From: Macrostomum lignano
Lineage: Eukaryota
Length of the DNA: 64,000 nucleotides
Direction of reading: 5' to 3'
Assembly (NCBI GenBank): GCA_002269645.1
Contig: NIVC01000694.1
Location: 310,001 to 374,000, forward strand
Below, piece by piece: positions 3,840-39,645 of this stretch. Each line of letters begins with the position of its first letter. The first letter of the stretch is position 1. The notes beneath the pieces were generated by a model. The model had not been told where the DNA came from. It ran no database searches and saw nothing but the letters and a program-made list of their open reading frames with translations. The position numbers were made by a program, and so were the translations under genes.

Positions 3840-5219
3840 ATGGCTCATCCTGGCCTGATGCCGCTCGACCTGGCCTTCTCTTTTGACACCACCGGCTCCA
3901 TGTGCTCAGTGCTTGATGAAGTGCGCAAGAATATTGCTGAGATGCTGGAGCGACTCAGCGTGGACATCCCGGAGATCCGCGTGGCTCTCATCGCTCATGG
4001 CGACTACGGTGACATTTATGAAACTGAGATACGGGACTTTGGCACCTCAACCGCTGATCTGGTGAAATTCGCTAAGACCGTGTCGAGCACGGGTGGCTCG
4101 GACAGGCCAGAGTGCTACGAGCTGGTGCTGCAGCAGGCGAGAACTCACCTCACGTGGCGCAAGAACAGCACTCGAGCTCTGGTGCTGATTGGCGACTCGT
4201 ATCCACATGAGGTCGGCAGCAGCAGGAACAAATATAGCATTGACTGGAAGGCTGAGGTTGAGCTGCTGCGCCAGCTTGGAGTGACCGTGTACTGTGTGCA
4301 GTGCCGTTCAGCGGACGATCAGGCAACCAGATTTATGGATCACGTAGCCAAAGTGACGGCTGGTCTGCGCCTGCCGCTCGCCGAGATTCGCGGAGTTCGC
4401 GACTTCCTGATGGCCATCGCATACCGAGAGTGCAGCTCCGACGCTCTTCAGGACATTTACGAGCACGAGGTGCGCACAAGGGATGGCCCGGCTCTGCCTG
4501 GTGACGTAAGTCGCATGCTGGGACTCGTGAAGAGAGCGTCTGCCACCTCTGCTGCTGGGTCCACCAAAGCAGCGGCCACGGTGAGCTCTGCGACAAAAAC
4601 TATAAAAGCTAAGATGGCCAAGGTGGCAACCAAAAGGACTCCAGTGAAGGCGAAGAAGACAACCAAGATCACTGCTGTGGCGACCAAATCAATAAATCCG
4701 AGGACGAAATCTGTGAAGACTTGCTCTACTAAGAAGCTCCCCACATCTACTGCCTCTATTAGTTGGTCTCCGTGGCGTCTTGTTGGACAGCCCGGAAGAG
4801 TGAACGGGTTGTCATGGCAACAGTTTGGCAGCGGCTCTGTTCGTCAGTTTCTGACCCGCAGCTCCGGCGGAGGTCAGCGCGCAGTGGAGCTCGCCGTACA
4901 GCCGCGGCCCGGTGCCCGGCGCTTTCCGCTGTTCGGCCGAGTCCTCTCTCTCAAAGCCGGCAGCCGCCTTCGTCACGGACTCTCAGCTGTCACTTTCGGA
5001 CGCCTCCTGTCTGGCCGGCCGACCGTCCGAGCGCAGCTGCTGCGCGTTCTGAGCCAAGGCATGCGGGTGTTCGCGAGGATCAGCAGCGCCGAAGCAACTG
5101 GCGCCGATCCGAAGCTTCTGCCGCGACTTGTGAAGGCGGCGAGCTACGCTTGGAACAGCGGCCGGAGCACCAGGTGCGCCGGGGTCTTCGTGTCCGTGTC
5201 CGAGAGGAGCCTTTGTTGA
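3840..5219 (+). CDS. Intronless vWA-domain protein with a Lys/Thr-rich linker and a degenerate GIY-YIG/ET-like C-terminal domain (459 aa)
   Basis: N-terminal vWA: DLAFSFDTTGSM (MIDAS-like), RVALIAHGDY, GGSDRPECYE, LVLIGDSYPH. Basic linker rich in K/T/A. C-terminus has WSPW...VELAVQ...VFARI...YAWN. Confidence 0.85.
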   Translation: MAHPGLMPLDLAFSFDTTGSMCSVLDEVRKNIAEMLERLSVDIPEIRVALIAHGDYGDIYETEIRDFGTSTADLVKFAKTVSSTGGSDRPECYELVLQQARTHLTWRKNSTRALVLIGDSYPHEVGSSRNKYSIDWKAEVELLRQLGVTVYCVQCRSADDQATRFMDHVAKVTAGLRLPLAEIRGVRDFLMAIAYRECSSDALQDIYEHEVRTRDGPALPGDVSRMLGLVKRASATSAAGSTKAAATVSSATKTIKAKMAKVATKRTPVKAKKTTKITAVATKSINPRTKSVKTCSTKKLPTSTASISWSPWRLVGQPGRVNGLSWQQFGSGSVRQFLTRSSGGGQRAVELAVQPRPGARRFPLFGRVLSLKAGSRLRHGLSAVTFGRLLSGRPTVRAQLLRVLSQGMRVFARISSAEATGADPKLLPRLVKAASYAWNSGRSTRCAGVFVSVSERSLC

Positions 5220-15627: not shown

Positions 15628-16555
15628 TAAAGGGGTGTCTAGCTTCGGAGGGGTGTCTATAGATTTGGAGAGGTTTTTAGACTCGGAGGGGTGTCTATAG
15701 ATAGATTTGGAGAGGTTTTTAGACTTGTATCTCGTGATAGATTTGGAGAGGTTTTTAGACTTGACGTGACTTGACTTGAAGTGCGCAGTGTGGGGCTGCA
15801 CCCCAATTGTTATTGGCGCTGAGTTTAGGACTGCTTGCTCTCTCCCCGCCTGCTCTGTCTGTCAATGTACGCTTATGCCTAACCGTCTAATCTATTAGCT
15901 GATGCTTTACTCGTATCTGCATGTACATCTATGTGCAATGCCAACTACAATAAATAACAACCTCTCGCCCATTTGCGGCTCAAGTTTGGCTAGCCAGCCA
16001 CGACACGACAGAGGTGTTTAGACTCGGAGGGTGTCTAGACTTGGAGGGGTGTCCATATATTCGGAGGGGTGTCTAGATTCAGAGGGTGTCTAGATTCGGA
16101 GGGGTGTCTAGATTCGGAGGGGTGTCTAGATTCGGAGGGGTGTCTAGATTCGGAGGGGTGTTTAGACTCCGAGGGCTGTCTAGATTTGGAGGGGTGTCTA
16201 GCTTCGGAGGGGTGTCTATAGATTTGGAGGGATTGTCTAGCTTCGGAGAGGTGTCTAGATTCGGAGAGGTGTCTAGATTCGGAGGGTGTCTAGATTCGGA
16301 GGGGTGTCTAGATTCGGAGGGGTGTCTAGATTCGGAGGGGTGTCTAGATTCGGAGGGTGTCCAGATTCGGAGGGTGTCTAGATTCGTAGGGGTGTCTAGA
16401 TTCGGAGGGGTGTCTAGATTCGGAGGGGTGTCTAGATTCGGAGGGGTGTCTAGATTCGGAGGGGTGTCTAGATTCGGAGGGGTGTCTAGATTCGGAGGGG
16501 TGTCTAGATTCGGAGGGGTGTCTAGATTCGGAGGCTTGTCTATATTCGGAGGAGT
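15628..16555. repeat. 18-bp satellite in two blocks (about 15628-15765 and 16013-16555)
   Basis: Unit ttcggaggggtgtctaga. Confidence 0.9.
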
Positions 16556-16866
16556 TGCTTAGATCTGAGGACAGGGTGATACATGTAGATAGCACGAGCC
16601 GCATACTTGCACGCCAAAGCACAAATAATTTCAGCTCAGGAAAATTCCGGCCCTCTGGTCCGTCTCTCCTTCCAAAACACAGAAATTACTTTGCTTTCCT
16701 GACTCCAAGACCTATTGCAGCAGAAATGACTCCAGCTCCCGGGATTTTTAATTAAGAGCTCTCTCACTCTACCGCAGACAGATCTGTAGAGCTGGCAGAG
16801 AGCGGTGCGTGACCGCCCCAGCCCACCGGTGGATTCGCATTGGGGGCGGCTGTTCGGCCCGAACGA

Positions 16867-17122
16867 GTACAATGCATGGGCTCTTGCAGCAGGCGCTTCG
16901 TGTGTACAATGGGCTCTTGCAGCAGGCGCTTCGCGTGTACAATGGGCTCTTGCAGCAGGCGCTTCGTGTGTGCAATGGGCTCTTGCAGCAGGCGCTTCGT
17001 GTGTACAATGGGCTCTTGCAGCATCGTGTGTACAATGGGCTCTTGCAGCAGGCGCTTCGTGTGTGCAATGGGCTCTTGCAGCAGGCGCTTCGTGTGTGCA
17101 ATGGGCTCTTGCAGCAGGCGCT
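16867..17122. repeat. 33-bp minisatellite, about 7-8 copies
   Basis: Unit atgggctcttgcagcaggcgcttcgtgtgtaca. Confidence 0.9.
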
Positions 17123-17734
17123 TTGCGTTCAGGCCCGGCTGTAACATTTGATCCGCGTTGCTCTGCTTCCAATTTTCAGAATACCTTTGAGACGAGATTT
17201 TGCATCAACCCCACAAAAATGCAGACCTTTTAGGTTGCTTCATCGCTTGTTTATAAAGGATGCTTTTTACAGGCTGCAGCCCTCTCCACAGGCTCTGGTC
17301 AGGCTCGGCTCTTTTCTCGACCATCTCAGGAAGGGAGGACATTCCTAAGCCTGAGTTCCGTGTGATTCTCAGCGAAATCCGCTTTAAAGACCGCCGTTCG
17401 AAAGCGATCTGAACTCAGCTGCCACTTGCGATTCGGCCCAAGAGAATGTCGAAGATTTGAAGCTCAAACAGTCTGTCTGTTCGCAGCACTCGGCGGTTGG
17501 GTCTGTCTGCTCTCATATGCTTTCTAAGGCTACTGGCACACGAGCTAACTGGCCTGTGCATGCAGTTAATCCTGTTAGCGAACTGCTGCGGAACTGTGGG
17601 GCTCAGCCGCAATGCAAACTGCTATTTGACTCCGGCTTAGCAGAGCAGGATCCCATCCAGCTGCTGCCTGACAGACAACCTTGCAAGGCGCTGTCTTCTC
17701 TCCAAAATAACTTAGTGCCACGGAGGCCAAAGCT

Positions 17735-17852
17735 AGCGCAAATCCTTGCTAATCTGTGACTAGACTAAACTGCAGAACTTGTAGCATCGGCCAGCGCAAA
17801 TCCTTGCTAATCTGTGACTAGACTAAACTGCAGAACTTGTAGCATCGGCCAG
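17735..17852. repeat. 58-bp direct tandem duplication
   Basis: agcgcaaatccttgctaatctgtgactagactaaactgcagaacttgtagcatcggcc occurs twice. Confidence 0.9.
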
Positions 17853-18582
17853 TAGCCAGTAGCTTGTAGCAATACGAGTACTGTTGGCCTTTAACGACTC
17901 GATCTCTTTGGACTGGTTGCATTTATTACAAAAGTAAGCACTGACAGGATAGGATCCCACAGCCAGCTCTGAGGCAATTCTGCCGATTCCGGTGACTCCT
18001 GAACCCATACAAGAGGGCCGCACTCATACTGTCTTCAGCATGCCGTCTCCATTTTTTAAATAAGAATGTGTATATTATCAAAACGCCTACCGAAATCTAT
18101 AATTGAGGCCCCCTGCTTACTCAATGCCGCATTGCTCACTCAATCACTAACCAGCAAAATGAAAGGCAAGACAGCGCTGGCTTCACCGGTTCGAGGGGCA
18201 TCGGTCAGCCTCCCAGTATATTTACCAATTCGGAGTGCACAGGTAAATATCAGCCATAGTGGAAAGAATGCGCGGAAACTCAGGCGACTCAACAGTCCCA
18301 GTGGATAGCGGGAGTCAGATGATCAAAGCATTATCAAAGCATTAGCAGGCGAATAAACAACAGACAGCCACGGGAGGGAAACTGCAAAAATACTCAGAGC
18401 CTCAGCGTCTGCTCTCGCAGCCGTGATCAAAGCTCAAAATGCACTTTGAGAGCTCCACAAGATTTGCTATGCGGAGTGTTTAATAGATGCGTCATGGAGG
18501 CTGGAACTTGCAATTCGATTTGTTCGCTGTAGAGATACAAAACTTCTACTGAAATCTGATTACATCAGGATCACATAAGGTC

Positions 18583-19103
18583 AAATAAGGATCACATGAG
18601 AATCACATAAAGATCACATAGGAATCACATGAGAATCACATAAGAAACACATGAGAATCACATAAGGATCACATAGGGTCAGAAAAGGATCACATATATA
18701 TCACATAAATATCACATAAGAATCACATGAGAATCACATAAGAATCACATAAGGATCACATAAGAATCACAAAAGGATCACAAAAGGATCACAAAAGAAT
18801 CACATAAGAATCACATAAAGATCACATAGGAATCACATGAGAATCACATAAGAATCACATGAGAATCACATAAGGATCACATAGGGTCAGAAAAGGATCA
18901 CATATATATCACATAAATATCACATAAGAATCACATGAGAATCACATAAGAATCACATAAGGATCACATAAGAATCACAAAAGGATCACAAAAGGATCAC
19001 ATAAGAATCACATAAGAATCACATAAGAATCACATAAGAATCACAAAAGGATCACATAAGAATCACATAAGAATCACATAAAGATCACATAAGAATCACA
19101 TGA
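18583..19103. repeat. 11-bp satellite with a higher-order duplication
   Basis: Unit atcacataaga. A block containing ggatcacatagggtcagaaaaggatcacatatatatc occurs twice. Confidence 0.9.
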
Positions 19104-19999: not shown

Positions 20000-22156
20000 T
20001 CACAGCGTTGTCTCAATATCGTAGTTTAAACAGATGTCCTTCCGCTGCTGCAACATCACGTGACGCCGTTGCTGCTGCGATTGCTCTTGGCTGTCCTGCT
20101 GCTTTTTCTTCTGCTGTTCTTGCTCTGCTTGTTGCCTCTGCGGCAGCAGTTGTTCTTGTTGCTGACTTTGCTCTTGGTGATGTGGTTGCTTCTTGGGCTG
20201 AAGCTGTTGCTGCTGCTGCTGCTGATGCCGAAGAAGGCTGCCATTTTGATGTGGCAGCAGCGGCGGTGACTCGGCCTGATCTCGCGGGTCAAGCCGCTGC
20301 CTTCGCCGCTGCAGCAGCCGCGGAGGCGGTTCTGAAGCCTCGTGTGTCTCATCGACCCGGCGAGTGGGTGACGAGTTTGGCGGCTGCTGCTGGCCGTTGG
20401 CGCCGCCGGGCTTGTTGATAAGGTTGTAGAGGAAGGCAGCAGACAACACTGCGATCTCCGCCAGCTCGAAGATGGTGATGACGCTGATGCCGACCCACAG
20501 GCCGAGGATGCCGCCAATGTCCGAGAAGAGCTTCTCGAGCTCGTAGCTCCGCTCCTCAATCAGCAGGCGCACGGTGAGCGTCTTGGGGTAGACCCTCACC
20601 TGCACCAGCGTGTTGCTGACGAACCGCTGCAGGTCCGTGCAGTCAGTGTCCTCCAGCGCCGCGGGGTCGTAGTTGGGGTGGATGTCCTCCCGGCAGCTAG
20701 ACACATTTCGATTGGAGATGCCCAGCGAAGTGACCAGAGCTGCAGGCGGCGTCAGGTTCGCCACCACAGAGATGTAGTCGGCGAGCATGCTGCCCAGCTT
20801 CTTGATGCGGATGAGGCTGCCCCGGCTGGCAAAAGTTCGGTCCGGCCATTCGGCCAGCGCAATGGCGGACGAGTACTCGCTGTACTGGCACTCGTTCAGG
20901 CACAGAGAGAGGCTCTGCTTCTGCGAGAAGTTGTAAGCGCACTCAGCCCGGTTGAGCCGCTCGCCGAGATCGGGAAACTTCTCGATGATCTTGGCGCCGA
21001 TCACCTTGACGATGAGGGCTGCGTACTTCCGCTTGCGCTCCTCGGAGAAGATGCGCCACATGTTGAGCACCAGGTTGGAGACTCTGGCGAAGCGGCTGCT
21101 GTTGAAGTGCCGCATGTCGAGAATGTCGTGGCAGTAATCCGCCTGCAGCAGGCGTTTTTCCTCGGCTGGTATCAGGCCTTCGATGGTGCAGCGGCAGGTT
21201 CTGAGCAGGCTCAGCGCGTCCTCATTCTCCACGCAGCTGTAGAGGCGGTCCTCGTACTCCTGGTGAAGGCGGAGGAAAGGGTTCCAGAAGCGGCGCACGC
21301 CGGCCGGGGCGCAGGGCCGCGTGTTCGTGTTGGCCAGGCGGATCTTCGCCTGCGACAGCGCGAAGTCGGTGCGCATGCCGACCGGGGCGGTGATGCCGAA
21401 CTCGTGCGGGTCCGGCCGCGTGTTGCGCTGATGAACCGTCACCTGGAAGCCTTTGCTCTCCAGGCCTGTGGCCGTCTTCATGATGCGGTCCTCCTCGAAG
21501 TTCGCATCGACTGAGGGCGGATACAGCACCATGATGAGGCCCATCTCTGCTCCCGCCTTCTCCAGCTGCCTGGACGCCGGCTGGAAGGTGTAGCAGTTGC
21601 CGTACTCTTTGTCGTAGTACAGGACGAAGTCATTGTGACTGCACGGCTTCTGGTCGAACTCGCAGTACAGCACAAAGTCATGTGCCCTGGCGCTGACCTC
21701 AGACATGTTGAACATGTGGCCGGAGGCCGTGTAGGTGGCCTTCAGGAACTTCTTGGACTCCCAGCCGAACTGGTAGCCCAGCATCGTCTGCACCACCTGG
21801 GAGAAGCGGCTGAAGGCGCGGTCCTCAGTGCGCCGGTCATAGTGGGACACATTGTACAGGAAGAACTTCTTCAGCATGGTGTCGCAGATGGTGACGTCCG
21901 GGAACTCAAAGCCGTTAACCTCCTGGCGCACCGTGGAGCTGACGGGGTAGCTGAAGTACAGGCGAATGACGGTGGCCGTGTGCAGCGTCACCCCGCAGAC
22001 GGCGCTGACAAAGATCGTGAACCAGATCACGCGCACCGTCCAGTTGGTGTCTTGCTGCACCAGCTTGTTCACGCCGTGAGCTGTGGAGCTGCCAAGCAGC
22101 TGCCGCAGCCGGCTGAGCAGCAGCTCTCGACGGCCAGGCTTTGTCAGGTCCGGCAT
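20000..22156 (-). CDS. DEG/ENaC-family ion channel subunit (FaNaC-like), intronless, 718 aa, Gln-rich C-tail
   Basis: STAHG pre-TM1 motif, TM1 (VIWFTIFVSAVCGV), FPDVTIC, YGNCYTF, a Cys-rich extracellular domain, and TM2 LFSDIGGILGLWVGISVITIFE. Confidence 0.92.
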   Translation of the reverse strand: MPDLTKPGRRELLLSRLRQLLGSSTAHGVNKLVQQDTNWTVRVIWFTIFVSAVCGVTLHTATVIRLYFSYPVSSTVRQEVNGFEFPDVTICDTMLKKFFLYNVSHYDRRTEDRAFSRFSQVVQTMLGYQFGWESKKFLKATYTASGHMFNMSEVSARAHDFVLYCEFDQKPCSHNDFVLYYDKEYGNCYTFQPASRQLEKAGAEMGLIMVLYPPSVDANFEEDRIMKTATGLESKGFQVTVHQRNTRPDPHEFGITAPVGMRTDFALSQAKIRLANTNTRPCAPAGVRRFWNPFLRLHQEYEDRLYSCVENEDALSLLRTCRCTIEGLIPAEEKRLLQADYCHDILDMRHFNSSRFARVSNLVLNMWRIFSEERKRKYAALIVKVIGAKIIEKFPDLGERLNRAECAYNFSQKQSLSLCLNECQYSEYSSAIALAEWPDRTFASRGSLIRIKKLGSMLADYISVVANLTPPAALVTSLGISNRNVSSCREDIHPNYDPAALEDTDCTDLQRFVSNTLVQVRVYPKTLTVRLLIEERSYELEKLFSDIGGILGLWVGISVITIFELAEIAVLSAAFLYNLINKPGGANGQQQPPNSSPTRRVDETHEASEPPPRLLQRRRQRLDPRDQAESPPLLPHQNGSLLRHQQQQQQQLQPKKQPHHQEQSQQQEQLLPQRQQAEQEQQKKKQQDSQEQSQQQRRHVMLQQRKDICLNYDIETTL

Positions 22157-24814
22157 TTCTCGTGGCCGCCGGCGCCGTCTTTTCGTCTTTTCTGTTGCTC
22201 CTTGTCTTCTTTGCTTGCTTCTTCGTTGTTCTCTTCTTTGCTAAGGAAATTCTTTCGGCCGGCCACAGACGACTCTGATTGGCTGGCAGACCGTTGGCCA
22301 ATCAGCCGCGGTGGCGGTTGCGCTGCCGATCCCAGCCCTCTCGCGGCCAGCTGGTGAGACGGCGCTGGCGTCAGCTGCTCGTCCGGCGGGATGCCATAAA
22401 CTTGCCCAGCTCAATGGCGCATTTCAATGCCATCAACTCCAATGGGGCGGGGCGGGCTATGACTGAACAGGCGAGTGGCTGGCAACACTTGCATTGGCGC
22501 TCTGGACTTGCTGACAGTTGGCATTCCCCACCCCCTGCAGCCGGTTAAGAAGTCAGACCGGGGCAGGCTGAGCCAGGAGCAATTCCTCTTGAGAGTGCAG
22601 CAACCTGTGAGAACCAGCGGGCCTCGCTCTATTGCCGCCAGTGCAAACAATTGTTAGTCAATTTCTGGAGGAGCGCGGCAGCGGCGTGCTGGAGTGGGGA
22701 GCTGGGGGGGGGGGGGCCCGATCTGCTCCGATCTTTTTATTGGCGAGACTGCTTGCAGGTCTCCGGCAAGTCCGAGGGCTCAGGCAGCTGAGTCCGCCTT
22801 CTCCCTACGGTGTGGAGGATGGAGGCAAATGGGCGAAACCGGAGAACTGGGAAGCAGTTAGCGACCACCCGGAAGCGCAACTTTCAACTTTCGCGATGCA
22901 GAAGCAGAGCTGGCCGGAGAAAGTGAGTGTTTTCTAAGAAAACTGCAGCCGCCCAGGGCCTCAAGCCGGTGCAGAATTGCGCAAATCGACCGCAGTGCAG
23001 GCGACACGGCAAAGTTGAAAGTAGCGGCTCAGCTGAGTTGCCAAGAGGATCTCCTGAAGCTGTGCGTGGCCTGGGCATGGACTGTTTGAGACTGGCTGAG
23101 GGGCAAAGTGCACCCGCAGCAAACCCTGCTGCCTCTGATTTCGTTTTGCCTTCTCGTGTTTGCCTTCCACTCTTGGCGGCGGCCCTGTTTGACCGGGGCA
23201 GCGGCGGCCAGGCGCGGGCGCTTCTGCAGTCTCCACTTGCTGGTTATTAGCTGTCCGACAAGCTGGGCTCCCAGCCACCGTCTCTCAGCGTCCTGCATCA
23301 CTCCGCCCCAATCCGCCTCACTCAATCTTTGCAAATATTGTCACTCCATCGCACTCATTGTCACTCTACCCGTCTCCCAAGCTTTAATTTTTAACCTCCC
23401 CTTAAGCTCTGAGAGTCGCATAATGCCAGCTAACGAGCCAGCCGGCCCGGAAACTGGTCGATCTGGAAGGCGTCCAGAAGGTTAAAAGTGCAAAACGTTC
23501 TGCAACCAACGTTTGTGAAGAAGATTTCGAGATGTGCAGCTCCCAGCCAAATCCTTGAAATTCCCCAAGGAGTCAGATTGGCCTTGGGTTGGATTTGTGA
23601 ATTTAATCAATACAACAAATAATTTGTGCTCAGCTGCAAACCCCACTGCCCGGGCAAGTCTAGAGAGCAGCGATTTCATATTTTTGCACTCCGCATTTCC
23701 TCAGGTAGCGGGGAAGCGCGCACAGCCCAGCGCCGCTACCTGTGCCGGAGAAATGCCTGAACTGAAATCCCTTCGCAAGCAGCAGTCCACCCAGCAGCAG
23801 AAGACTTAAAAGCTTTTTCTTCTTCTAAAAGCAGATTCAACTCAAAACAGATGACCGCTGCTGCTGCTGCTGCTGCTGCTGCCACTCAACTGGAATCCGC
23901 CGTCAGGAATCCCGCGAATGCCCGAGACAGCTTGAAGTGCAGCAGGAGAGTCGCGTCTCGCCAAGCTATCTGGGAAGAGAAACCGTTCGCCTTATTGGCA
24001 GGTGAATAAAAATAAAATGCAGCTCCGATTGAGCTGACATCTCCGCATCCGCGCGAAGGGAAACCCGGCTGCAGCCAGAGATCCCAATCTGACCTCTTCC
24101 CCCGCCTCTTGGGAAATCAAATTCTTCGGCCATCTATTTTCAATATCTGGCCGGAGATCGGCCGGCCGCGGCGGGCAGACAGTCAAAGTATTTGGCTGAT
24201 CATTCGGGGGGGGGGGTTTGCTCGCTTGTCCGGGACTTGAGCCCTATAAATCAGGCCGCTTTAGCAGCAGGCATCTTCCCCATTAACTTGAATACGCTTG
24301 GGTTCTACTGCCGTGATTATTGCTTTGAAGCATTTGACTCTGGTAGAGCCGGTCGAATAGTGGCAGCTGGTAGGAGCTGAATTGGGTGGGTAATTTACTT
24401 GCAGCACGGATCTTAAGGCACTTCAAATTCATGAGAATCGGCTGGATCCGTTCACCAATACCAGTGCTTGGGCAGGTAAGCAGTGCATGACCGATGACCA
24501 ACTGAAACTGATACTTTTCTCTCTGTCTCAGGCCTGACCGCCCCTAGGGACTCTCAAGCCTCCGCAAGCTCGAGAACACTGTTCCATCAATCCATCACCC
24601 TGGCTGCTCGGGGACAGCGAGACCGCGGCTGAGATCCATGGCTTCATCGAGTGACATCGGTCTGCTGTATGAGCGATGCAGCCACTACTCAACTAGCATT
24701 AACTCAGCGAATCCTTGGTTGCTACAGTTTCCCGGTGGTTCTGAAGTAAAAATGGTGCCTGTACTCAATTCCACTGTGGAAATTCCTAACTACATGTATT
24801 GATATCGCTATAGC

Positions 24815-25092
24815 CAGCACAGTCCCGACTGACAGCGCAGTCCCGACTGACAGCACAGTCCCGACTGACAGCACAGTCCCGACTGACAGCACAGTCCCGA
24901 CTGACAGCGCAGTCCCGACTGACAGCGCAGTCCCGACTGACAGCGCAGTCCCGACTGACAGCGCAGTCCCGACTGACAGCACAGTCCCGACTGACAGCAC
25001 AGTCCCGACTGACAGCACAGTCCGGACTGACAGCGCAGTCCCGACTGACAGCGCAGTCCCGACTGACAGCACAGTCCCGAGACAGCACAGTC
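24815..25092. repeat. 18-bp minisatellite, about 15 copies
   Basis: Unit cagcacagtcccgactga. Confidence 0.95.
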
Positions 25093-25977
25093 AGGGCTGA
25101 CACAAGTTGTTGTCAGTCGGTTGTCACGCAGATAAATTTTAGCGGTCCTTAGTCGTAGACTAAGCGAATGATGAAGGCCAGGCTACTAACAATAGTATAA
25201 AAATTACCAGAAGGAGAGCATTGGTTGAAATTGCTAAGTCACGAGAGGGCTGGGCTGCCTACTCACTGTCGCAAATATAGAAATCTGCATCACCGAATCA
25301 AGGACTACTAGACTAGACTACTAGACTCTATAACGAAGTGTTCCTAGTTGTCACTGCACCGAATGTGCTCCGACGCCTGACAATCAGCAAGCTATGATGA
25401 ATAAGGTGTGTGACTTTGTGGTTCATAGGCAAGTACTCGTACAAAATAGGCTACAAAAAGCAAACTAGTCTGCTACTGTCTAAGCTTTGGTACTTTTGGT
25501 GTCTTGCTGAAAAGCTGGGATCTACATGTACACGAGTAGACGGCCTCTGTACTGCGCTTTTTCACTTTCGTCATCCGTGCTATGAGTAGTATGAGAGTGG
25601 CTAAAATCCATGCTCAAAAGATGCTGAGAATCGCACTGGAGCTAGTGCAGACGTACAAAGCACGAGCCTCGAATTTTTTTCAAGTAGCAAAGGCGAGGTG
25701 GCTGCCTATTACGTGCATAATAGTGGCAAGATTGTACACCAAGTGTCTCTTTATATATAGACTAACTCAAAGATGTAGACAGCCGTCCTCACCCTCCATA
25801 ATCTGAATCAGAATTTCTTAGAGCAAGGTAAGATTTTATCCATTTTAAGATAATTTTTAATTGAAACAATTTGAGCTGTACTAAAAAGTTGCGCCTTCTA
25901 CTAAAAACCTCCCCATTTTTCCAGACGGATTTAAATTGCTATCACTGATGAAGCCGGCAAACGTATAAAGAGTAACA

Positions 25978-27234
25978 ATGGGAAATACAGACAGCCTGCC
26001 GGTAATCTCCCAAACAAAAAGTGTGGTCCAGCTGATTGCTGGCGACACCGAAGGTGCCAAGCAAACACAAAAAAACTTTGTCAAGGGTTGCCCTGTTGTA
26101 TCGCAGGTTGTGGCAACTGTCGCTCTTGCTAGCGGTAATTCTGAATTTGCTAAAGAGTCCCAACTCTACTTTATTCAGGGAGTTTCCGACTTTGCCGATG
26201 CAGTTCCAGTTCTCGGCCACGTGAAAGGTGCCGGCCATTACGCATTCGGTGACAGAGAGGGCGGTGACAAAGCCATGAAGGCGGCCTCGCGTTCAGTGGG
26301 CGTTCTCGGAGGTGGGATTGCTGGCTGTGCTGCCTGTGGTCCCGCGGGAGCCGTTGCCGGAGGAGTTGCTGGGGGAGCAGCAATGGATGGGATCATATCT
26401 GCAGTTGATTCGGCTCTTCATAACGAAAAGCGGCTGTACGGACACTTTCGTGCGGTAGACCAACTCCGCAACAGTAAAATGTCAGCTGGAGAAGGCTTCG
26501 ACTGGGTGGTGACGTTTGTTTTTGATGGTGTGGCAGGTTACCGCGGTGCAAAGGCCGTAGAGAATTTCACAGCGAAAAGAGCTGCGTACGCACAGATGAA
26601 GAGTGAAATCGTCGAGGCAGTTCGCCAGGGAAAACTCGAACTGGCGGGCGCAGAATCGGTAGATGTCATTGTCCGAGAAATCCAGCATGTCGCTCTACAG
26701 ATGAAGGAAGCTGTAAAATCTGGCCCCGAAGGCCTCAAAGGAACCAAGTGCGCCATGGTAATCGATGTGGAAGGTACCGCATACACCGGCTATTCCTTCC
26801 GCCTTCGGAAGGCACAGCGCCTGGATCCCTTCCAAGGCGAGGAAGCAACCACACAGCGGATGCTGAACGAAAAGTTCCCGAACGGAGCGCCTAAAGTCCG
26901 CGGTTCGGCTGGAGGTGAGCCGAGCTGCGCGGAGCAGCACGCGCTGCATGAATTCCACAAAGCCCGGGGCAACCCGCGTGCTGCTCCCTGCAGAATGATC
27001 ACCATCGAGTATGACGGCCAACAGTTTCGTGCCGTGGCGCGTTGCGGCAACTGCAAGAAAGTTGGGCAACACATCCCGATGGGAGACGTCGTGACTGACG
27101 AGATCAATGGCGCTCCGGTTCCGCTCGATGACGCGACTAAGAAAGCATTCTTCAATGCACTTTTGGTTCAAATTCTGAGCGTCTGCGACTGCGACTGCGA
27201 CTCCGACAACGACGAGGAAGGCAAAGACAAATGA
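25978..27234 (+). CDS. Intronless toxin-like protein: three N-terminal PVxS/GQ/H repeats, a glycine zipper and a C-terminal Zn-deaminase-like (CAE...CxxC) domain, 418 aa
   Basis: Clean ATG-to-stop ORF. Repeats DSLPVISQ, GCPVVSQ and DAVPVLGH. GxxxG tract GVLGGGIAG...GAVAGGVAGG. SCAEQHAL at 26923-26946 and RCGNC at 27040-27054. Confidence 0.8.
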   Translation: MGNTDSLPVISQTKSVVQLIAGDTEGAKQTQKNFVKGCPVVSQVVATVALASGNSEFAKESQLYFIQGVSDFADAVPVLGHVKGAGHYAFGDREGGDKAMKAASRSVGVLGGGIAGCAACGPAGAVAGGVAGGAAMDGIISAVDSALHNEKRLYGHFRAVDQLRNSKMSAGEGFDWVVTFVFDGVAGYRGAKAVENFTAKRAAYAQMKSEIVEAVRQGKLELAGAESVDVIVREIQHVALQMKEAVKSGPEGLKGTKCAMVIDVEGTAYTGYSFRLRKAQRLDPFQGEEATTQRMLNEKFPNGAPKVRGSAGGEPSCAEQHALHEFHKARGNPRAAPCRMITIEYDGQQFRAVARCGNCKKVGQHIPMGDVVTDEINGAPVPLDDATKKAFFNALLVQILSVCDCDCDSDNDEEGKDK

Positions 27235-29270: not shown

Positions 29271-30232
29271 TCAGTAGTATGAAAATATCGGGTGCTGCAG
29301 CAGTTCCCGCACCGGAGGACGCCTTCCTTGGTCCAAGGCTGTGCAGCTGCTGTAGAAATCTGACAGCTGCGCGGAACACTTGACAGGCAGTCTGCTGGGA
29401 GCTCCGCTACCAGTGACAGTGTCAATGATTTCCGTCGTGGATTTAGTGTAAAATGGCACGGCACCGCTGATCATCTGGTAGACTGTGATGCCGAGGGCCC
29501 ACACATCGGACTTTACGCTGAAGCGCCGAGTAGTGAACACTTCGGGGGCCATAAACGGTAGAGTGCCGCAGGCGTTGGTGCAGGTCATGAGTATATCAGT
29601 AGCCTGCATTCCCCTTTTCATTTCCATGTTTAGTTTGATGGAGAGGCCGAAGTCAATGATCTTCACAATGCCTTCCCGAGTCACCATGATGTTCTGGCCC
29701 TTGAGATCGCGATGCAGCACCGGGGGGTTCCGGGTGTGCAAGTACCTTGCAGATCTGAATTTAGGAATAATAAAGTTGCTTCATTAAAAATCAGCATAGC
29801 TTATATATGCTTCCAAAACGTGTCGATAAAACAAGACTGGTATGGTTAGTTAATTATCAGGCTACTGTACCAGACTGAGAAAATTATTTCACCATTCCAA
29901 ATACTCACTTGATGCAAGAAGCCAACAGCCCTTTGTTCTGCGAGTTGTCCTAGCTCTGACAGGTCGCTACCCTCAATCGACTCGGTGAACACAACCAGCT
30001 TGTTGCCCTGATGCTTTGCGGTAACGAAGCGAACGATATTGGGATGGTCCAGCTGCCGAAGAGTTGATACTTCATTCTGGACCTCTCTCTGGCTGTCTGC
30101 ACTCATCGCGCTGGTCTCAATGTACTTGGCAGCCAATATTGAGCCGGTGTCAGTGCGCACTTTCCACACCTCTCCGAAGCCACCACTTCCAAGAATGCTG
30201 ATGTCTGTCCAGCTTTGAAAATTGTCAGACAT
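29271..30232 (-). pseudogene. Ser/Thr protein kinase (STE-like catalytic domain only) with an apparent frame disruption at the exon junction
   Basis: Exon 1 (30232-29909) has GSGGFGEV, AAK and HPNIV. Exon 2 (about 29754-29271) has HRDLKGQN, DFG, GTLPFMAPE and DVWALG. The phase-0 donor (caa|gtgagt) joined to the attcag| acceptor is out of frame with YLHT. Confidence 0.65.
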
Positions 30233-32661: not shown

Positions 32662-35600
32662 ATGGAAGGCAGCCCAGACAAGCAGATCCTCGTGGACGAA
32701 GGGAAACAGACCGCCAAGGTAGACAAACCGCTGACATTGCGGAAGTTCCCTCAGCTATTCTTCAGTGGCTTTTGCCCAAAAATACAGCGAAACCAAAAGA
32801 CCAAACTAAACAAAACAAACCAAGCCTGAAATATTTCAGAAGAAATGAAGAGAGTTCACTTTTCACCTACGTCAGCATACCAGCATACCCAATGTGCATA
32901 CACCAGACATTTACCCCTGCATGCGTTGAAATTATACCAATTTCCGTACCAAAGTAGGTGTTGGGACTCAAGTTTTAAAACAAATTTAAGGACAAATTCG
33001 TTTATAACAAAAACGCATTTCAATTAGAACTGTCACAATATTAATATTAATTGGAAGAAAGAAAGAAAATTATCTGAGCATGGTCAATGAATAAAAAAAA
33101 TTGTTTAAATGCGTCAATTTTTCGTGAGTACCACAAAAACGTACCGTTTCAAAACTGCTCTAGCTTCGAACAATGGAAAGCTTGCTTCAACTTATTTTCA
33201 GTTCGGGAGCTCCTGAGTTGTTCATGCGCGAACAGAAAGACTACAAAACCCGCTTGAGTTTTTTGAAGTTTTAATGCTTAGTTAGTTAATAATTAGTTAA
33301 TAAATACTAATAATTTATTAATTCATTACACCTGCCCCAAATAGGCTGCTGTGCAACCGACAGTTCAGCCGCAGTTATTGCGTTTATTTATTTATTTATG
33401 TATTATTCCATTATGCATTTATTTATTCGAAGTTTTGTACATTCATAGCTGTAGCTGACAAAATTATAGTAGCTCGAATAGAATTTATTTCTTTTGGGTG
33501 AAACTTTCCGCTAACTTGAATGAAATTCAAAGGGCTCAGGGCTATAACTTTTGCATACTAAAAATTAATTAACACACTAGATGAGATATAATTTAAACTC
33601 GCCTATATTGTCTGTTGTGTTCATCTTCTGTATTTCTGTTGCCGCAATCTTTATGTTCCTTTGACTAAGGCTTATCATTTTTATCAATAAGCAGTCAAAT
33701 AAGCTAATAGAATTCATATGCGATTTGTTCTTGAAATGGCAAACATTTTCATAAGTCTATTGAAACTGTTAAAGCATCCTTCATAGCCCTGGCAATTGCT
33801 TAACTTTGCAGGAGGCTGAAACGCCACCTGACGCGGAGGCTGAAGCACAGCCTGAAGCGGAGGCTGAAGCACCACCTGAAGCGGAGGCTGAAGCATCGCC
33901 TGAAGTGGAGGCTGGAGCACCGCCTGAAGCGGAGGCTGAAGCACCGCCTGAAGTGGAGGCTGGAGCACCGCCTGAAGCGGAGGCTGGAGCACCACCTGAA
34001 GCGGAGGCTGGAGCACCACCTGAAGCGGAGGCTGAAACACCACCTGAAGCGGAGGCTGGAGCACCACCTGAAGCGGAGGCTGAAGCACCACCTGAAGCGG
34101 AGGCCAGCCCAGCAAGGTCGGTGCTGACTGGAGTGCTGCTGGACGTGTCGGGGTCAATGAAAGAAAGCTTCAGCTCGGAGAAGGCTGCCGAGGCAGTGGG
34201 ATACGTAGTTCGTAACAAGTGGGTTCGCTCCATCTTCAGAGTTGCTGATCAGCTGATCGAGCAGGACGCACCGGAGGAGAGCCGCTTGTTTGCGATCGGC
34301 GTTGGAGCCGAGGATAGAGCGGAAGGCATTCCGCAGTCCCCAGTGGTCTTTGACATTCTCGCTTCGCTCGATGAAAGGAGAGCTGAAATCGAAGCCATCC
34401 GGGTGAGAATGCAGCGGGTGCGCGAACTGTGGCGGAGTTACCCCGGAAAGGTTGAAGTATTTGATGAAGCATTCTCTATACTAGAAAATGAAGGTGCAAC
34501 AGAAATCCGATTCTGGGGCAGAATGGACATCATGCACAAAGCTGTGGATCTCCACGTTGCATATCAGATTCTTGACCATCTCAAGACGGACGAAGACTTT
34601 CGGCATAAAATGGCCATGGAATTTCTTCCAGACGAATGCAGAAACCCTTCTAGCAGTGCGCGGAGAACCGTGGCAAAACTAAATCAGCCTTTGAGTGCCT
34701 CAGATGAAGTGAAAAAAACTGCTACAACCAATGCTGCAAAACGTGTGATTGAAAAATGCAAAGCCTATCTAATGAAGAGCCTTATTGACCAAGCAATAAA
34801 GCTTCTAGAGCAAAACGGAGCTCCCGATCTGAGTTCAGAACTCATGGAAATTGACATCGGCCAGATGGTCAACTTTGACAGTGCCGCTGCGATTCTGAAT
34901 CAGCTTCAAAATAATAAAGACTTTTTGGAAAAGGCAACAAACAAACTGATTCCTGAAGAATGTAAGAGACGAAGTAAAAAATTGCAAGAATTATTTGAGC
35001 AGAAAATTCAAAGCAGTGTAAGAGAAATAGCTGCACCAGCTCCAACATGGGCCACACTAATGCTCATGCCAGCAGCTGCAGCAGCAGCAGCAGTAGGAGG
35101 AGTCCGTTGGATAATGCGGAAGGATAATAATGAAGGACCGGCTCTTGCGGACATTGATTTTCCCGATTTCTATCACGAACACTTACGATTTTGTTCTCAG
35201 ATTCCTCTTGCAAAAGAAGTGAAGACCGCGGCAACGAGTGCGGCTGTACATAGAACCATTAAAGAACTCAAAAGGCTTACGCAAAATGAATTGGATCATG
35301 AGCACAGGCAGGGACTACTTGCAGACATTGTAAAGGAAGCTATATTAATACTCGAAAAAAATGGTTCGCCAAAGCTGAGCGACAAGCTTCACGAAATCGA
35401 CTTTCAAAATTTGGTAACTCTGGATGCCGCCAAACAGATTTACAAGGCGCTCAATACCAATAATGACTTCCTGAAGAGTGTCGTGAACGAGTTCATTCCC
35501 ATGGAATGTAAGAATCGCGACTCAGAAATGGCCAAGAGGGGATGGACCACAGCCGAAACTGGAGCAACGGTATTTACAGTTGCATGCCTAGCCGGCGGTA

Positions 35601-37291
35601 TGTTAACCGGTGGAGTAGCAGCTGTGCCAATCGCAGTTGGAGCCGCCGCTGTTGTTCAACGTGCAGAGAAATCTACGGACAATCGTGTGAGCGGAGCCAC
35701 AGAGGATTCCGTCAGGGAAGTCATACAGAAGTGCAGAGACTATATTAAAAAGAAATGGGAAAATCAGTTTCCACCTAAACAACTTCTTCACATGTCGCAA
35801 AAGTCCATCTTCAGTGCAAAGGAAGCCAAAACTATTCTGCGCTCCTGCGCCGATGGCGAGACGGAGCTGACGGATCAGGACATCGACGAGCTGATGGAAG
35901 CCTTGGAGCCCTACATTTACGGAGGAACCCCGCTGATGGAGGCAATGTACAACTCGATTGATCTTTTTAAACGCCATGTCTGCAAAACACGAAAGAACGA
36001 TAAACTTTTATTCGTTTTATCCGACGGTGAACCTGCCGACTCAAAAAGTTTCGACCTGAAAGCTCTGCTGAAGCAACATCAGGACGCAAAGGTCACAATT
36101 GTGTCCTGCTACATAACAAAGACAGACATGCGTGAACCGCGTCGCCTCTACAGCACGGATTGCGAGGAGTGGGAAAAAGCAGCGAAAACTATGTTTGAAA
36201 TGGCCTCGACAGTCTCCACCCAGAAGGTCCCCAGAACCCTGTTCATCCGAAAGGGCTGGACAATCGACACCGACAACAATGAGACCCGACTGTTCTTCCA
36301 GATCAATCACCCCGACCTCATCGATGAGGTCTGCGACATCGCCAAGAGCTGCGTGTGCTCGCAGGACGCGCTGTCGGACGTGCTGGCCGACGTGGACCTC
36401 GACCTGTACATCAACAGGGCCAACGAGGGCTTCGAGCCGCAGCGACAGTCGGAGCTCACCTGCTATGCAGTCGCGTCGGCGACCGTCATGCACCTGAGCA
36501 TGCTCAGGGTTGTGGGTCGGGACGGCGGATATCCGAACTTCTTCCAGCTCAGAGACGAGATCGTCGCTCAGTTCGGACAGCGCAGAGCCCGCACAGTCGA
36601 GGTGCTGCGGACAGTGTGTCCGGAGTACCGGCTGCAGTGCAAGGAGGTCGATGAGAGAGCCGCGCTGGACGCCGTCATCGCCAAGCAGCCAGTCGTGGCG
36701 AGGTTCCACCTCACTAAGAGCGAGTGGGGCAGCTTCAAGCAGTTCTTCAAGCAGAATCCCGAAGGCATTCTCACAAAGTCGGAAATCGACATCAGCCAAA
36801 GACCCGTTGCACAGAAGACTTTCGGACACGCGGTGGTGCTGATGAGCTTCGACAGACACAGCCTGAGGCTGATGAACTCGTGGGGCTCCGGCTGGGGCGA
36901 CGGCGGCTTCTTCAGAGTGCAGAGCGCAGCCGTGCTCAGGATGAAGTTCATCGATGTGTTCTGGACCGAGGAGCAGCTGACTGAGGCCGAGAGAGCCGCC
37001 TTCAAAGAGCGCGGACCGGGCGTCGCTGAAAAGCTGTTTGCCTCACTGAAGGGTCTGCAGACATGCAAGTACGGGTGCCCGCTGTGCAAAAGGGAGTCTC
37101 TGGTGTCGGAGTTCTCGGGACACACGCTGGAGGCCAGGTGTCCCAAATGCAGGCGCAGCTTCAATGCGAACCTGGCGGGCAGCGACCTGGCGCTGAACCT
37201 GTACCTCACCTCGCTGCTGCCCAGGAAAACTCCAGAGCAACCCACTGACAACACGCCCACAGGTGAACAGGAAAACCGTGAGCTTAAGTGA
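32662..37291 (+). CDS. Large protein: PEAEAGAP repeats, split vWA domain with three inserted helical repeats, papain-like (C1-type) cysteine protease, C-terminal Zn ribbon (about 1178 aa)
   Basis: The main exon 33812-37291 begins at a ctttgcag| acceptor. A candidate first exon 32662-32718 (MEGSPDKQILVDEGKQTAK, aag|gtagac) joins in phase 0 but is less certain. Motifs: LLDVSGS, YGGTPLMEA, LFVLSDGEP, QSELTCYAVA, FGHAVVL, MNSWGSGWGDGGFF, CPLC...CPKC. Confidence 0.8.
33812..34105 (+). repeat. 24-bp coding tandem repeat (PEAEAGAP-like), about 12 copies
   Basis: Unit cctgaagcggaggctggagcacca and variants, in frame with the downstream ORF. Confidence 0.9.
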
Positions 37292-38430
37292 TGAAAAGAT
37301 AAACTTTCGTTTCATGACAACTACTCTGTGAGTGCGTCATGTACTTTTGTTACCCGTACACTTTTTATTGATTATTGAACTTAAATTTTCCTTTTTTTTC
37401 TTTTTGCACTCGGATTTCATTTTATAATTGCTGCGAATGGGTTTAGTTGGAGCAGCGTTGCTAAAGCCTCTGGAATGCTCAAAGCTGCTGCATCTGTTTT
37501 ATCACAGTGCTCAGTAGTGAATTTTCAGTTTTTTGTACAGTTAATTCTTCACTTTTCTAAGCAACTCGTAACGTTACTACGAGCAAGGTTGACTGAAATC
37601 GCTGAAAATTGGCTGCCAGTGCACACATTAACAATAACATTTATATGCTTAGCTTCTAACCCTTACTGCTGCTGAAGTCTGCGAGATTTATGCTTCCATT
37701 ATTATCACACAGAATTTTATTTTCTGGGCTGTGTCTGCAAACTTCGTTTTTTTCATCCCCTCCAGGAGCCGCTGCTAGCCATGCAGCCCGAAGTTCATTT
37801 TGGTGTTGATGTTTTTATTAAGACAGCCAATTGTGCCACTGCTACATAGCTCATATTATTGTGTTTTGCTCTAAAAAAAGAATAGACGCCCTGCAATAAA
37901 CTGAACAATAGTGGCTCATTCTGTCTGTCAGTGGCGCCGCAGGGGCTGAGCTCGAATCATATGTCCGGAGACAGACACCCAAATATGCAGTATTCAAATA
38001 GGCAGAAAATGCGGTGAGACAGTGGCACCTGCTCAGCAGTGTCTCGCTAGGTGCCGACCATCTTTACCAACATCACAGCTATAATGATACGGAAAAGTCG
38101 GCTTGGACACCAGAAGCGCATAACTGAAAAAATATTAATTGCTTTGCTTTCTCAGACCCTTTGCAGTCGAAAACATCAGACTGGGCGGGCGTGCTACTGC
38201 TGTAAGATCGCTGGGGTGAAAATTATTGTCAGCTGCTCATTTCTACTCCCCCCCCCAGCTCATTCGCTGCACTCAACGTAATTGAATTGTTTTGATAACT
38301 CATATAATATTTTGCAGTTGGCTGTGCTGTGTGTTTATTAATATTTGGATACTTGGATACTTTTTTATACGGTGGCCATGGCAAATAAATTTTATATTCC
38401 GGCTGCATCCATGTGCGCAGACTCAGACTT

Positions 38431-39645
38431 TCACCTACTCAGTTTACCTGCTCAGTTTACCTACTCAGTTTACCTACTCAGTTTACCTACTCAGTTTACC
38501 TGCCCAGTTTACCTACTCAGTTTACCTACTCAGTTTACCTGCCCAGTTTACCTGCTCAGTTTACCTGCCCAGTTTACCTACTCAGTTTACCTGCCCAGTT
38601 TACCTGCTCAGTTTACCTGCCCAGTTTACCTACTCAGTTTACCTGCCCAGTTTACCTACTCAGTTTACCTGCCCAGTTTACCTACTCAGTTTACCTGCCC
38701 AGTTTACCTACTCAGTTTACCTGCCCAGTTTACCTGCTCAGTTTACCTGCCCAGTTTACCTGCTCAGTTTACCTGCCCAGTTTACCTACTCAGTTTACCT
38801 GCCCAGTTTACCTACTCAGTTTACCTGCCCAGTTTACCTACTCAGTTTACCTGCCCAGTTTACCTACTCAGTTTACCTGCTCAGTTTACCTGCTCAGTTT
38901 ACCTGCTCAGTTTACCTGCTCAGTTTACCTGCTCAGTTTACCTGCCCAGTTTACCTGCTCAGTTTACCTGCCCAGTTTACCTGCTCAGTTTACCTGCCCA
39001 GTTTACCTACTCAGTTTACCTGCCCAGTTTACCTACTCAGTTTACCTGCCCAGTTTACCTACTCAGTTTACCTGCCCAGTTTACCTACTCAGTTTACCTG
39101 CTCAGTTTACCTGCTCAGTTTACCTGCTCAGTTTACCTGCTCAGTTTACCTGCTCAGTTTACCTGCCCAGTTTACCTGCTCAGTTTACCTGCTCAGCTTA
39201 CCTACTCAGTTTACCTGCTCAGCTTACCTGCTCAGTTTACCTACTCAGTTTACCTGCTCAGTTTACCTGCCCAGTTTACCTACTCAGTTTACCTGCCCAG
39301 TTTACCTACTCAGTTTACCTGCCCAGTTTACCTACTCAGTTTACCTGCTCAGTTTACCTGCTCAGTTTACCTGCTCAGTTTACCTGCTCAGTTTACCTGC
39401 CCAGTTTACCTGCTCAGTTTACCTGCTCAGCTTACCTACTCAGTTTACCTGCTCAGCTTACCTGCTCAGTTTATCTACTCAGTTTACCTGCCCAGTTTAC
39501 CCACTCAGTTTATCTACTCAGTTTACCCACTCAGTTTACCCACTCAGTTCATCTGCTCAGTTTATCTACTCAGTTTACCTACTCAGTTTATCTACTCAGT
39601 TTACCCACTCAGTTCATCTGCTCAGCTTACCTACTCAGTTTACTA
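38431..39645. repeat. 13-bp satellite, about 90 copies
   Basis: Units cagtttacctact, cagtttacctgcc and cagtttacctgct. Confidence 0.95.

Follow-up and report, generated by a model that had tools for sequence, protein, structure and literature searches.

What kind of protein is encoded by an animal gene whose product resembles the tip of a bacterial toxin? This question is raised by a gene of the flatworm Macrostomum lignano, found at positions 25978-27234 (+) of a 64,000-nucleotide stretch (positions 310,001 to 374,000 of the 442-kb scaffold NIVC01000694.1, assembly GCA_002269645.1), which is referred to here as the window and to which all coordinates apply. A preliminary description, made from the sequence alone, had proposed a delivered, polymorphic-toxin-like protein with a nucleic-acid deaminase head, possibly acquired laterally. 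The computational analyses reported here favor a membrane-anchored intracellular effector of biological conflict or immunity that would deaminate cytosine in nucleic acids, a reading to which, taken as a whole chain, we assign a probability of roughly 0.6.

The gene is intact. Its ATG-to-TGA open reading frame (ORF) consists of a single coding exon of 418 amino acids (aa) plus a stop codon, the translation matches exactly the intronless product described previously, including its start MGNTDS, and the exact protein is encoded on the M. lignano scaffold. A first protein search recovered 55 homologues with E-values down to 1e-271, and a second copy in the same genome, on NIVC01001366.1, is 98% identical with eight amino acid differences, none of them at catalytic residues. 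These findings exclude a chance ORF. Identity between the flanks of the two copies is ~98.6% and extends over kilobases, with an 18-bp minisatellite included (window 16013-16552; the stretch compared was 15978-18939 plus the gene), so that the second copy is a homeolog, a haplotype or a recent duplicate. The genome of M. lignano is duplicated (polyploid), with which a copy at ~98.6% identity is consistent.

The C-terminal part of the protein very probably adopts a zinc-dependent deaminase fold with an intact active site. A full-length AlphaFold2 model built from a 16-sequence alignment had a predicted local distance difference test (pLDDT) score of 75.6, with an all-helical N-terminal half and a C-terminal alpha/beta domain at pLDDT 76-91, and a domain-only model (~135 aa, 68 diverse sequences) reached a pLDDT of 90.7 and a predicted template-modelling score (pTM) of 0.86. 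In Foldseek searches of the PDB with both models, 50 of the 50 top matches were cytidine deaminases (CDA) or blasticidin-S deaminases (BSD), with probabilities of 0.69-1.00 (at least 0.95 for the top 38-47), a best E-value of 2.5e-3 and a template-modelling (TM) score of about 0.5. A deaminase fold, as anticipated in the preliminary description, was therefore confidently predicted, and the structure search yielded no other kind of enzyme among its top 50 matches. The layout that had been read from the sequence, a glycine zipper and a helical linker followed by strand-strand(TGYS)-CAEQHAL-strand-RCGNC, was also seen in the models, with an insert before the CAEQHAL helix. This insert of ~44 aa contains two short helices, and its conserved residues are R277 and L296, not His.

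In both models C317-A-E319 sits at the start of helix 318-330 and C356-x-x-C359 at the start of helix 357-362, the canonical places for these motifs, and past the latter helix only two very short strands follow, with no helix 4. Sixteen full-length homologues, with identities down to 30%, all keep residues C317, E319, A322, R355, C356 and C359. Across 68 domains, down to about 20% identity, the three cysteines are invariant and A318, E319, A322, R355 and N358 are at least 90% conserved; CxE and CxxC are both present in 78/78 full-length domains of proteins that share the N-terminal region discussed below. The CAE and CxxC residues, on which the original deaminase assignment depended, are thus essentially invariant family-wide.

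An AID/APOBEC or TadA-like identity was considered and rejected, given the lack of AID/APOBEC structures among the top 50 PDB matches, the CAE and RCxNC motifs and the missing helix 4. A fold search of BFVD returned only insignificant dCMP-deaminase and helical-repeat matches, the curated models of Pfam and NCBIfam gave no assignment for the query, and the query had no match in the PADLOC library of anti-phage defence systems. At the C-terminal tip, a Cys-Asp run (CDCDCDSDNDEE) is conserved as CDCDNPH in the closest (rotifer-like) homologues only, and in mollusc and fish homologues this tail is replaced by a short Gly/Ala-rich hydrophobic segment. Acylation, metal binding and autoinhibition are possible functions of the Cys-Asp tail.

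The nearest sequence relatives of the domain were found among bacterial toxins. A domain profile was searched against 1.84 billion cluster representatives and found 97 of them, of which eight match PF14431 (YwqJ-like deaminase), three above the gathering score (P0141, P0145 and P0148), and two match PF00383. The PF14431-positive proteins were retrieved at whole-library E-values of 1e-4 to 1e-3. One relative, with 2,886 aa, has DUF6443 close to the N-terminus and the deaminase at the very end of the chain, which is the layout of a bacterial polymorphic toxin, and a relative of another representative sits in a Pedobacter genome. An hhalign comparison of 16 eukaryotic with eight bacterial-type domains gave a probability of 98.5% (E 1.5e-15), aligned 99 columns and placed CAE and RCxNC in register. 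The earlier guess of a YwqJ-like relationship is supported by both the reach of the profile and this alignment. A search of 5.8 billion proteins with the domain-fragment alignment returned three matches, probably a limitation of its word index.

The signature of the YwqJ-like clade is Gx[CH]xE in helix 2, and basidiomycetes are the sole eukaryotes listed for that clade (Iyer et al. 2011, PMC3239186, Table 1). The bacterial proteins that bridge to the animal domain also lack the glycine of this signature and end shortly after CxxC. Judged by its sequence, the domain would represent a eukaryotic sister branch that diverges from the YwqJ-like clade and not a plain member of it, because it has an insert before helix 2 and a reduced C-terminus, lacks the glycine and is invisible to PF14431. 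According to a September 2026 preprint (PMC13648612), YwqJ of B. subtilis is a cytidine deaminase toxin that is delivered by a type VII secretion system, acts on single-stranded DNA (ssDNA) and requires its catalytic glutamate. Since that enzyme acts on ssDNA, the substrate most likely predicted for the flatworm domain, by homology, is cytosine in single-stranded nucleic acid, which would be converted to uracil. Some remote deaminase-domain proteins that lack the N-terminal region of the flatworm protein carry immunoglobulin (I-set, V-set) or SAP domains, which hints at secreted or surface-bound and chromatin-bound versions of the deaminase in other eukaryotes.

The N-terminal half consists of three helical-hairpin repeats and a glycine zipper, followed by a linker. 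The shared part (the N-module, ~195 aa) has no Pfam annotation and ends at approximately aa 195, and the remaining linker is specific to the deaminase-bearing subfamily. Local alignment indicated that the three repeats of ~32 aa noticed earlier are real, with z=14 between repeats 1 and 2 and z=7.2 between repeats 1 and 3, scores that none of 2000 shuffles reached; repeats 2 and 3 compared directly are only weakly similar (z=1.8). Invariant residues in repeat 3 are P77, G80, H81, K83, G84, H87, Y88 and D92, and the zipper glycines G113, G116, G121, G124 and G129 are invariant in the 16 full-length homologues. The zipper (aa 105-136) is the most hydrophobic segment of the protein, with a Kyte-Doolittle maximum of 1.5, and the N-terminus of the query is hydrophilic. 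A myristoylation-type start, MG..x[STAGCN], is present in 56 of the 97 homologues with complete N-termini.

In many homologues the zipper region (aa 95-145) gives recurrent sub-threshold Pfam matches to C19orf12, MccV, Bacteriocin_IIc, Gly-zipper_Omp and DUF456, all far under the cut-offs (best E 4.5e-4), and the resemblance to C19orf12, MccV and Bacteriocin_IIc likely reflects similar composition and structure, not homology. One homologue, P0042, has an additional copy of repeat 3 (ALPVVGHAKGLGHYAFGDIKGGNRAMK..., alignment columns 77-110), so repeat number varies between lineages.

About 40 of the 55 homologues in the first search align over aa 1-190 only, and a profile search with N-module proteins found at least 271 proteins, every named one of which is eukaryotic. 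The animals include a sponge (Halichondria), molluscs (Saccostrea, Sinanodonta, Lottia), a rotifer (Rotaria), springtails, a mite, krill, nematodes (Pristionchus spp., Caenorhabditis tropicalis, Halicephalobus) and fishes (Huso, Neoarius, Pholidichthys), the orthologues in fishes and molluscs being located on chromosome-scale scaffolds. Outside the animals, N-module proteins were found in a glomeromycete fungus, Symbiodinium, Reticulomyxa and stramenopile algae. These proteins keep the signature PV.GH.KG..HY..GD.EGGD.AMK and the zipper glycines almost without exception. Pattern scans of 185,579 prokaryotic genomes (GTDB) and of IMG/VR detected no relatives of the N-module, which is moderate evidence for absence given that one peptide pattern was used in each.

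Behind this constant module the C-termini are exchanged. The deaminase is present in 80 of 161 N-module proteins compared, and 136 tails of at least 60 aa fell into 29 unrelated types, most of them without annotation. Those that could be recognized are a Scabin-like ADP-ribosyltransferase (ART), a U-box, a RING domain, a non-specific endonuclease (Endonuclea_NS_2) and a HicA-like RNase (HicA_toxin), and a weak match to PBECR1, a BECR-type RNase, was also obtained. The expectation that homologues keep the N-terminus and swap the C-terminus was thus confirmed, with at least 29 tail types and several toxin domains. The Huso protein is labelled 'YwqJ-like deaminase' in UniRef, so automatic annotation has already touched the family.

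Two recurrent tail motifs were also observed. The springtail N-module proteins P0034 and P0035 and their relatives, one of which is named 'DNA polymerase beta' in its source, carry a duplicated NRANQ[LM]NPN...NNHANQ[LM]NPNNP motif at the C-terminus. The tails of P0023, P0025, P0026 and P0051 share ..H[IF]L..H.. / E[IV]IT[AI]F, which is reminiscent of BECR-type RNases and goes with the weak PBECR1 match.

The elements of a delivery system were searched for in the same proteins. With Pfam and NCBIfam, neither the query nor 39 + 61 N-module homologues showed a PT-TG, secretion or trafficking domain (signal peptide, LXG/WXG, PAAR, RHS, TPS). The resemblance of the D..PV.G..K motifs to pre-toxin PT-TG domains that had been proposed did not hold, as no Pfam match appeared at E<=10 in the query and 39 homologues, and the idea of a delivered toxin found no support, a cytosolic myristoylation motif being present in place of a signal peptide or secretion domain. 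A comparison of the M. lignano locus with two homologous eukaryotic loci revealed no conserved neighbouring ORF or immunity gene within +/-10 kb; the locus therefore does not represent a polymorphic-toxin system in the strict sense. Lateral acquisition, also suggested in the preliminary description, may apply at most to the deaminase head and in the deep past, since the N-module was found in eukaryotes only and the gene lies in ordinary animal chromatin with eukaryotic signals.

Altogether, these observations suggested an effector that acts within the cell that makes it, a model in which we infer zinc binding, catalysis, substrate, myristoylation, membrane insertion and biological role. The protein would be synthesised in the cytosol and tethered to a membrane through a myristoylated Gly2 and the glycine-zipper module, the three helical-hairpin repeats and the zipper helix forming a eukaryote-specific membrane-association module that lies in, or inserts into, the bilayer. 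The long helical linker would join this module to the C-terminal zinc-dependent deaminase, in which Cys317, Cys356 and Cys359 may hold the zinc and Glu319 may shuttle the proton, so that the tethered head could act as a polynucleotide cytosine deaminase. In such an arrangement the N-module would set the place and timing of the effector and the C-terminal head the type of damage. The targets could be viruses, mobile elements or intracellular microbes (innate immunity), or the protein could take part in regulated self-killing. A role in conflict or immunity is suggested because the same N-module is common to nucleases, ARTs and E3 ligases, and the RING and U-box heads speak for a site of action within a eukaryotic cell rather than for a purely exported toxin.

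A number of observations weigh against this interpretation and lower the confidence placed in it. PF14431 gave no match to the query or to 10 other animal members even at E<=10, and the Gx[CH]xE signature is absent from the family, which has P/L/R-x-C-A-E (PSCAE in the query) with no Gly at -2. The link to deaminases in the PDB comes from fold comparison only, because PDB sequence searches with the protein and with the 16-sequence, 68-sequence and bacterial-subgroup profiles all failed to find a solved deaminase, and the Foldseek E-values are modest, at about 1e-3 to 1e-2. Among solved structures, the nearest ones are of enzymes whose substrates are free nucleosides or a nucleoside antibiotic rather than polynucleotides. 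The clustering of C317, C356, C359 and E319 at one zinc is predicted from their canonical placement at helix N-termini and from superposition on CDA and BSD structures. Additionally, the hydrophobicity of the zipper is only moderate, myristoylation would not be universal because ~40% of the homologues with complete N-termini lack Gly2, and the ratio of nonsynonymous to synonymous substitution between the two M. lignano copies, which differ at 12 positions, is uninformative.

Other explanations were weighed against the intracellular effector. The protein could be an inter-organismal toxin, its N-module driving unconventional secretion (e.g., in vesicles), its zipper forming a pore or translocon and its head entering prey, competitors or parasites. 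A constant N-terminus with swapped heads does mirror the bacterial polymorphic toxins, some of the heads are of the classical exotoxin type (Scabin-like ART, non-specific endonuclease), and glycine-zipper segments are reported to depolarise membranes in bacterial toxins such as EsxX (PMC12744356). However, no signal peptide or known secretion domain is present, the myristoylation motif implies that the protein is made in the cytosol, RING and U-box heads are sensible only where a eukaryotic cell supplies E1 and E2 enzymes, a linked immunity gene is missing and no gland- or venom-specific context is known, all of which make export unlikely. A cell-death executioner, in which the N-module would be an MLKL/HeLo-like membrane permeabiliser and the C-terminal domains accessory or regulatory, with the deaminase as a second lethal hit or nucleic-acid sensor, is somewhat harder to defend. 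The conserved zipper and helical hairpins would suit such a permeabiliser, as would an N-module that is far more conserved than the heads and spans eukaryotic supergroups, and some family members of 166-277 aa, many of them from short contigs, hold little beyond this module. Nevertheless, the strict conservation of the catalytic residues suggests that the head is an active enzyme and not a mere regulator, none of the Foldseek matches had a 4HB, HeLo or gasdermin fold, and there is no evidence of an activation switch.

A metabolic or detoxifying role, as a membrane-tethered deaminase of (deoxy)cytidine or another small molecule that serves pyrimidine salvage or xenobiotic resistance and has no part in conflict, is improbable. 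Tetrameric cytidine and blasticidin-S deaminases have a three-cysteine zinc site of the form Cys-x-Glu...Cys-x-x-Cys; they are also the closest solved folds, and the flatworm domain would have the same Cys-Cys-Cys site with CxE. On the other hand, no CDA or dCMP deaminase model is matched at the sequence level, the family has RCxNC in place of the usual PCGxCRQ of tetrameric cytidine deaminases, and its nearest sequence relatives are deaminases at the tips of bacterial polymorphic toxins. For a housekeeping enzyme, the patchy phyletic spread, the rapid divergence and an N-module common to nucleases, ARTs and E3 ligases are atypical as well. That the gene is an artefact, either bacterial contamination of the assembly or the dead remnant of a horizontal transfer, is hardly credible. 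The missing intron in the coding region, a GC content at third codon positions (GC3) below that of the neighbouring genes and a bacterial nearest outgroup of the deaminase domain might raise this suspicion. The animal-gene neighbours and the minisatellite surroundings on the M. lignano scaffold exclude contamination, which is effectively refuted also by the eukaryotic TATA, intron and polyadenylation signals (read by eye) and the second, syntenic copy. The N-module was undetected in the prokaryotic genomes scanned, orthologues occur on chromosome-scale fish and mollusc scaffolds, and the intact ORF with all catalytic residues kept speaks against a relic.

A broader proposal is offered tentatively and is possible rather than probable. 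The N-module with its swappable heads may be an ancient pan-eukaryotic counterpart of the bacterial polymorphic toxins, serving as an effector system of innate immunity or cell suicide in which a lipid-anchored zipper module would target or breach a membrane (of a pathogen vacuole, viral replication organelle, mitochondrion or neighbouring cell) and deliver a deaminase, ADP-ribosyltransferase, nuclease or E3 ligase. The compact three-cysteine head of ~135 aa would then be a new animal polynucleotide cytosine deaminase that stands apart from the AID/APOBEC and ADAR/ADAT lineages and reaches as far as the fishes.

Comparison with known systems helps to define what is particular to this family. 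With the YwqJ-like clade it shares C/HxE in helix 2, CxxC in helix 3, the reduced elements after helix 3 (the C-terminal-hairpin division) and the placement of the deaminase at the C-terminal end of a modular protein whose N-terminal part is constant. The flatworm family differs in lacking the Gly of Gx[CH]xE, in having RCxNC and a conserved MG.V.TD motif, in being encoded by animals and other eukaryotes, in carrying a myristoylation-motif glycine-zipper module instead of LXG/PT-TG, RHS or PAAR, and in the lack of a linked immunity gene of the YwqK, SUKH or Imm6 type. The bacterial polymorphic toxins in general (Zhang et al. 2012, PMC3482391) likewise follow a logic in which the N-terminal module is conserved and many C-terminal toxin domains can be exchanged, and the domain repertoire is the same (deaminase, ART, EndoNS, HicA/BECR RNases). 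The flatworm family is, in contrast, eukaryotic and cytosolic, has no secretion-system domain, repeats/RHS filament, releasing peptidase, adjacent immunity gene or cassette array, and includes RING and U-box heads that lie outside the bacterial repertoire.

The homotetrameric cytidine and blasticidin-S deaminases (PDB 1jtk, 2z3h, 4f3w) are the closest solved folds and have a core of similar size, but identity is 13-16% at a TM score of about 0.5 with no sequence-profile match; the flatworm domain has a 44-residue insert before helix 2 and is fused to a 250-aa N-terminal region, and its relatives are toxins, not salvage enzymes. The metazoan AID/APOBEC-like deaminases, including the secreted SNADs (Krishnan et al. 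2018, PMC5889660), are also animal-encoded nucleic-acid deaminases and are thought to derive from bacterial toxin deaminases and to function in immunity, whereas they fall into the helix-4 division with HxE...PCxxC, and none of their structures was among the top 50 matches. That paper mentions neither YwqJ nor rotifers, and its single mention of flatworms concerns AID/APOBEC-like deaminases. Glycine-zipper proteins such as C19orf12, class II bacteriocins/microcin V and EsxX of S. aureus have a similar GxxxG-rich helix of ~30 residues, for which roles in membrane insertion or depolarisation are reported (PMC4470416, PMC12744356), but they have no counterpart of the three hairpin repeats with the PV.GH.KG..HY signature.

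Judged by the searchable literature, three elements appear to be new: a YwqJ-like branch in animals and across eukaryotes, an N-module that lacks annotation, and the polymorphic repertoire of its heads; the deaminase fold and the theme of toxin ancestry are already known. Literature searches found no description of the eukaryotic family, and as most papers in subscription journals were outside their scope, an earlier description is possible. To our knowledge, the polynucleotide deaminases known so far in animals belong to the AID/APOBEC, ADAR and ADAT lineages only. If the intracellular-effector reading is true, a further lineage of toxin-derived deaminases, invisible to standard domain models, exists in animals from sponges' relatives to fishes and in several protist lineages. 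It would also mean that a new conserved eukaryotic membrane module is paired with changing toxin-type enzymes, a pattern that immune and conflict systems typically show, and would add to the view that bacterial toxin domains have repeatedly been borrowed for eukaryotic immunity. The gene is thus a candidate immune effector and a candidate nucleic-acid editing enzyme, and small deaminases of this three-cysteine type, as relatives of an ssDNA cytidine deaminase, are candidate base-editing scaffolds and methylation-mapping tools. Because M. lignano is a transgenic model that is tractable by RNA interference, the biology is directly testable.

Table 1. Coordinates of the features of the deaminase gene, its protein product and its neighbours (window positions; UTR, untranslated region).
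Feature	Position	Strand	Basis or remark
DEG/ENaC (amiloride-sensitive sodium channel) ORF	20000-22156	-	Uninterrupted, 718 aa; Pfam ASC, E 1.9e-60
TATA-like element (TATATATAG), putative core promoter	25752-25760	+	Read by eye from the sequence; predicted
Putative 97-nt GT..AG 5'-UTR intron (CAAG-GTAAGA ... TACTAAA ... TTTTTCCAG-A)	25828-25924	+	Read by eye; predicted
MGNTDS, N-myristoylation-type start (Gly2, Ser6)	25978-25995	+	Consensus MGxxx[S/T]; modification predicted
Repeat 1, aa 6-37, helix-turn-helix hairpin PVxSQ...GDxEGA..TQ.NF	25993-26088	+	z=14 vs repeat 2; helices 8-20, 24-37
Repeat 2, aa 38-69	26089-26184	+	Local alignment; helices 39-51, 55-74
Repeat 3, aa 75-106, signature PV.GH.KG..HY..GD.EGGD.AMK	26200-26295	+	z=7.2 vs repeat 1
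Glycine zipper, aa 105-136 (VGVLGGGIAGCAACGPAGAVAGGVAGGAAMDG), predicted membrane-inserting helix	26290-26385	+	Hydropathy maximum, invariant glycines
Long helical linker, aa 170-248	26485-26721	+	AlphaFold model helices 170-216, 228-248
Deaminase domain, aa 251-384	26728-27129	+	Domain model pLDDT 90.7; top 50 PDB matches all CDA/BSD
C317-A318-E319, predicted zinc ligand and catalytic glutamate, start of helix 2	26926-26934	+	Conservation; aligns to bacterial YwqJ-like C[AS]E
R355-C356-G-N358-C359, two further predicted zinc ligands, start of helix 3	27040-27054	+	Conservation; in register with bacterial RCxNC
Low-confidence C-terminal tail, short helix and acidic Cys-Asp run (CDCDCDSDNDEE)	27130-27231	+	pLDDT <50, aa 385-418
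AATAAA polyadenylation signal, 25 nt past the stop codon	27259-27264	+	Read by eye; predicted
Protein-kinase exon	29271-29741	-	Neighbouring animal gene

The neighbouring ORFs in the window are animal genes and encode a DEG/ENaC channel, a VWA protein, a protein-kinase exon and a FYVE protein. The putative 5'-UTR intron (Table 1) contains TACTAAA branch-like sites, as read by eye, and position 25924 could alternatively be a trans-splice acceptor. The GC3 of the deaminase gene is 0.55, compared to 0.66-0.83 in four neighbouring coding regions (3840-5219, 20000-22156, 29271-29741 and 56686-57900). Expression level, gene age and foreign origin are possible causes of this low value, which is uninterpretable alone. 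The DEG/ENaC gene, 4 kb upstream of the deaminase gene, is also apparently single-exon.

Minisatellites crowd the window between 10798 and 63689, with 34 rows reported by Tandem Repeats Finder at periods of 11-95 bp (e.g., 24815-25092, 38433-39643, 58087-59151, 60081-60889, 62163-62849 and 63200-63689), and account for the strong local GC and AT skews. The long ORFs at 24722-25103, 38292-39704, 60068-61204 and 62854-63753 are translated tandem repeats and non-genic. An additional ORF of 1,161 aa at 33806-37291 (+) begins in a 24-bp tandem repeat (33811-34104) and has a borderline match to the papain-like Peptidase_C1 near its C-terminus (E 6e-4, just under the cut-off); a repeat-rich secreted protease-like protein and an artefact are both possible.

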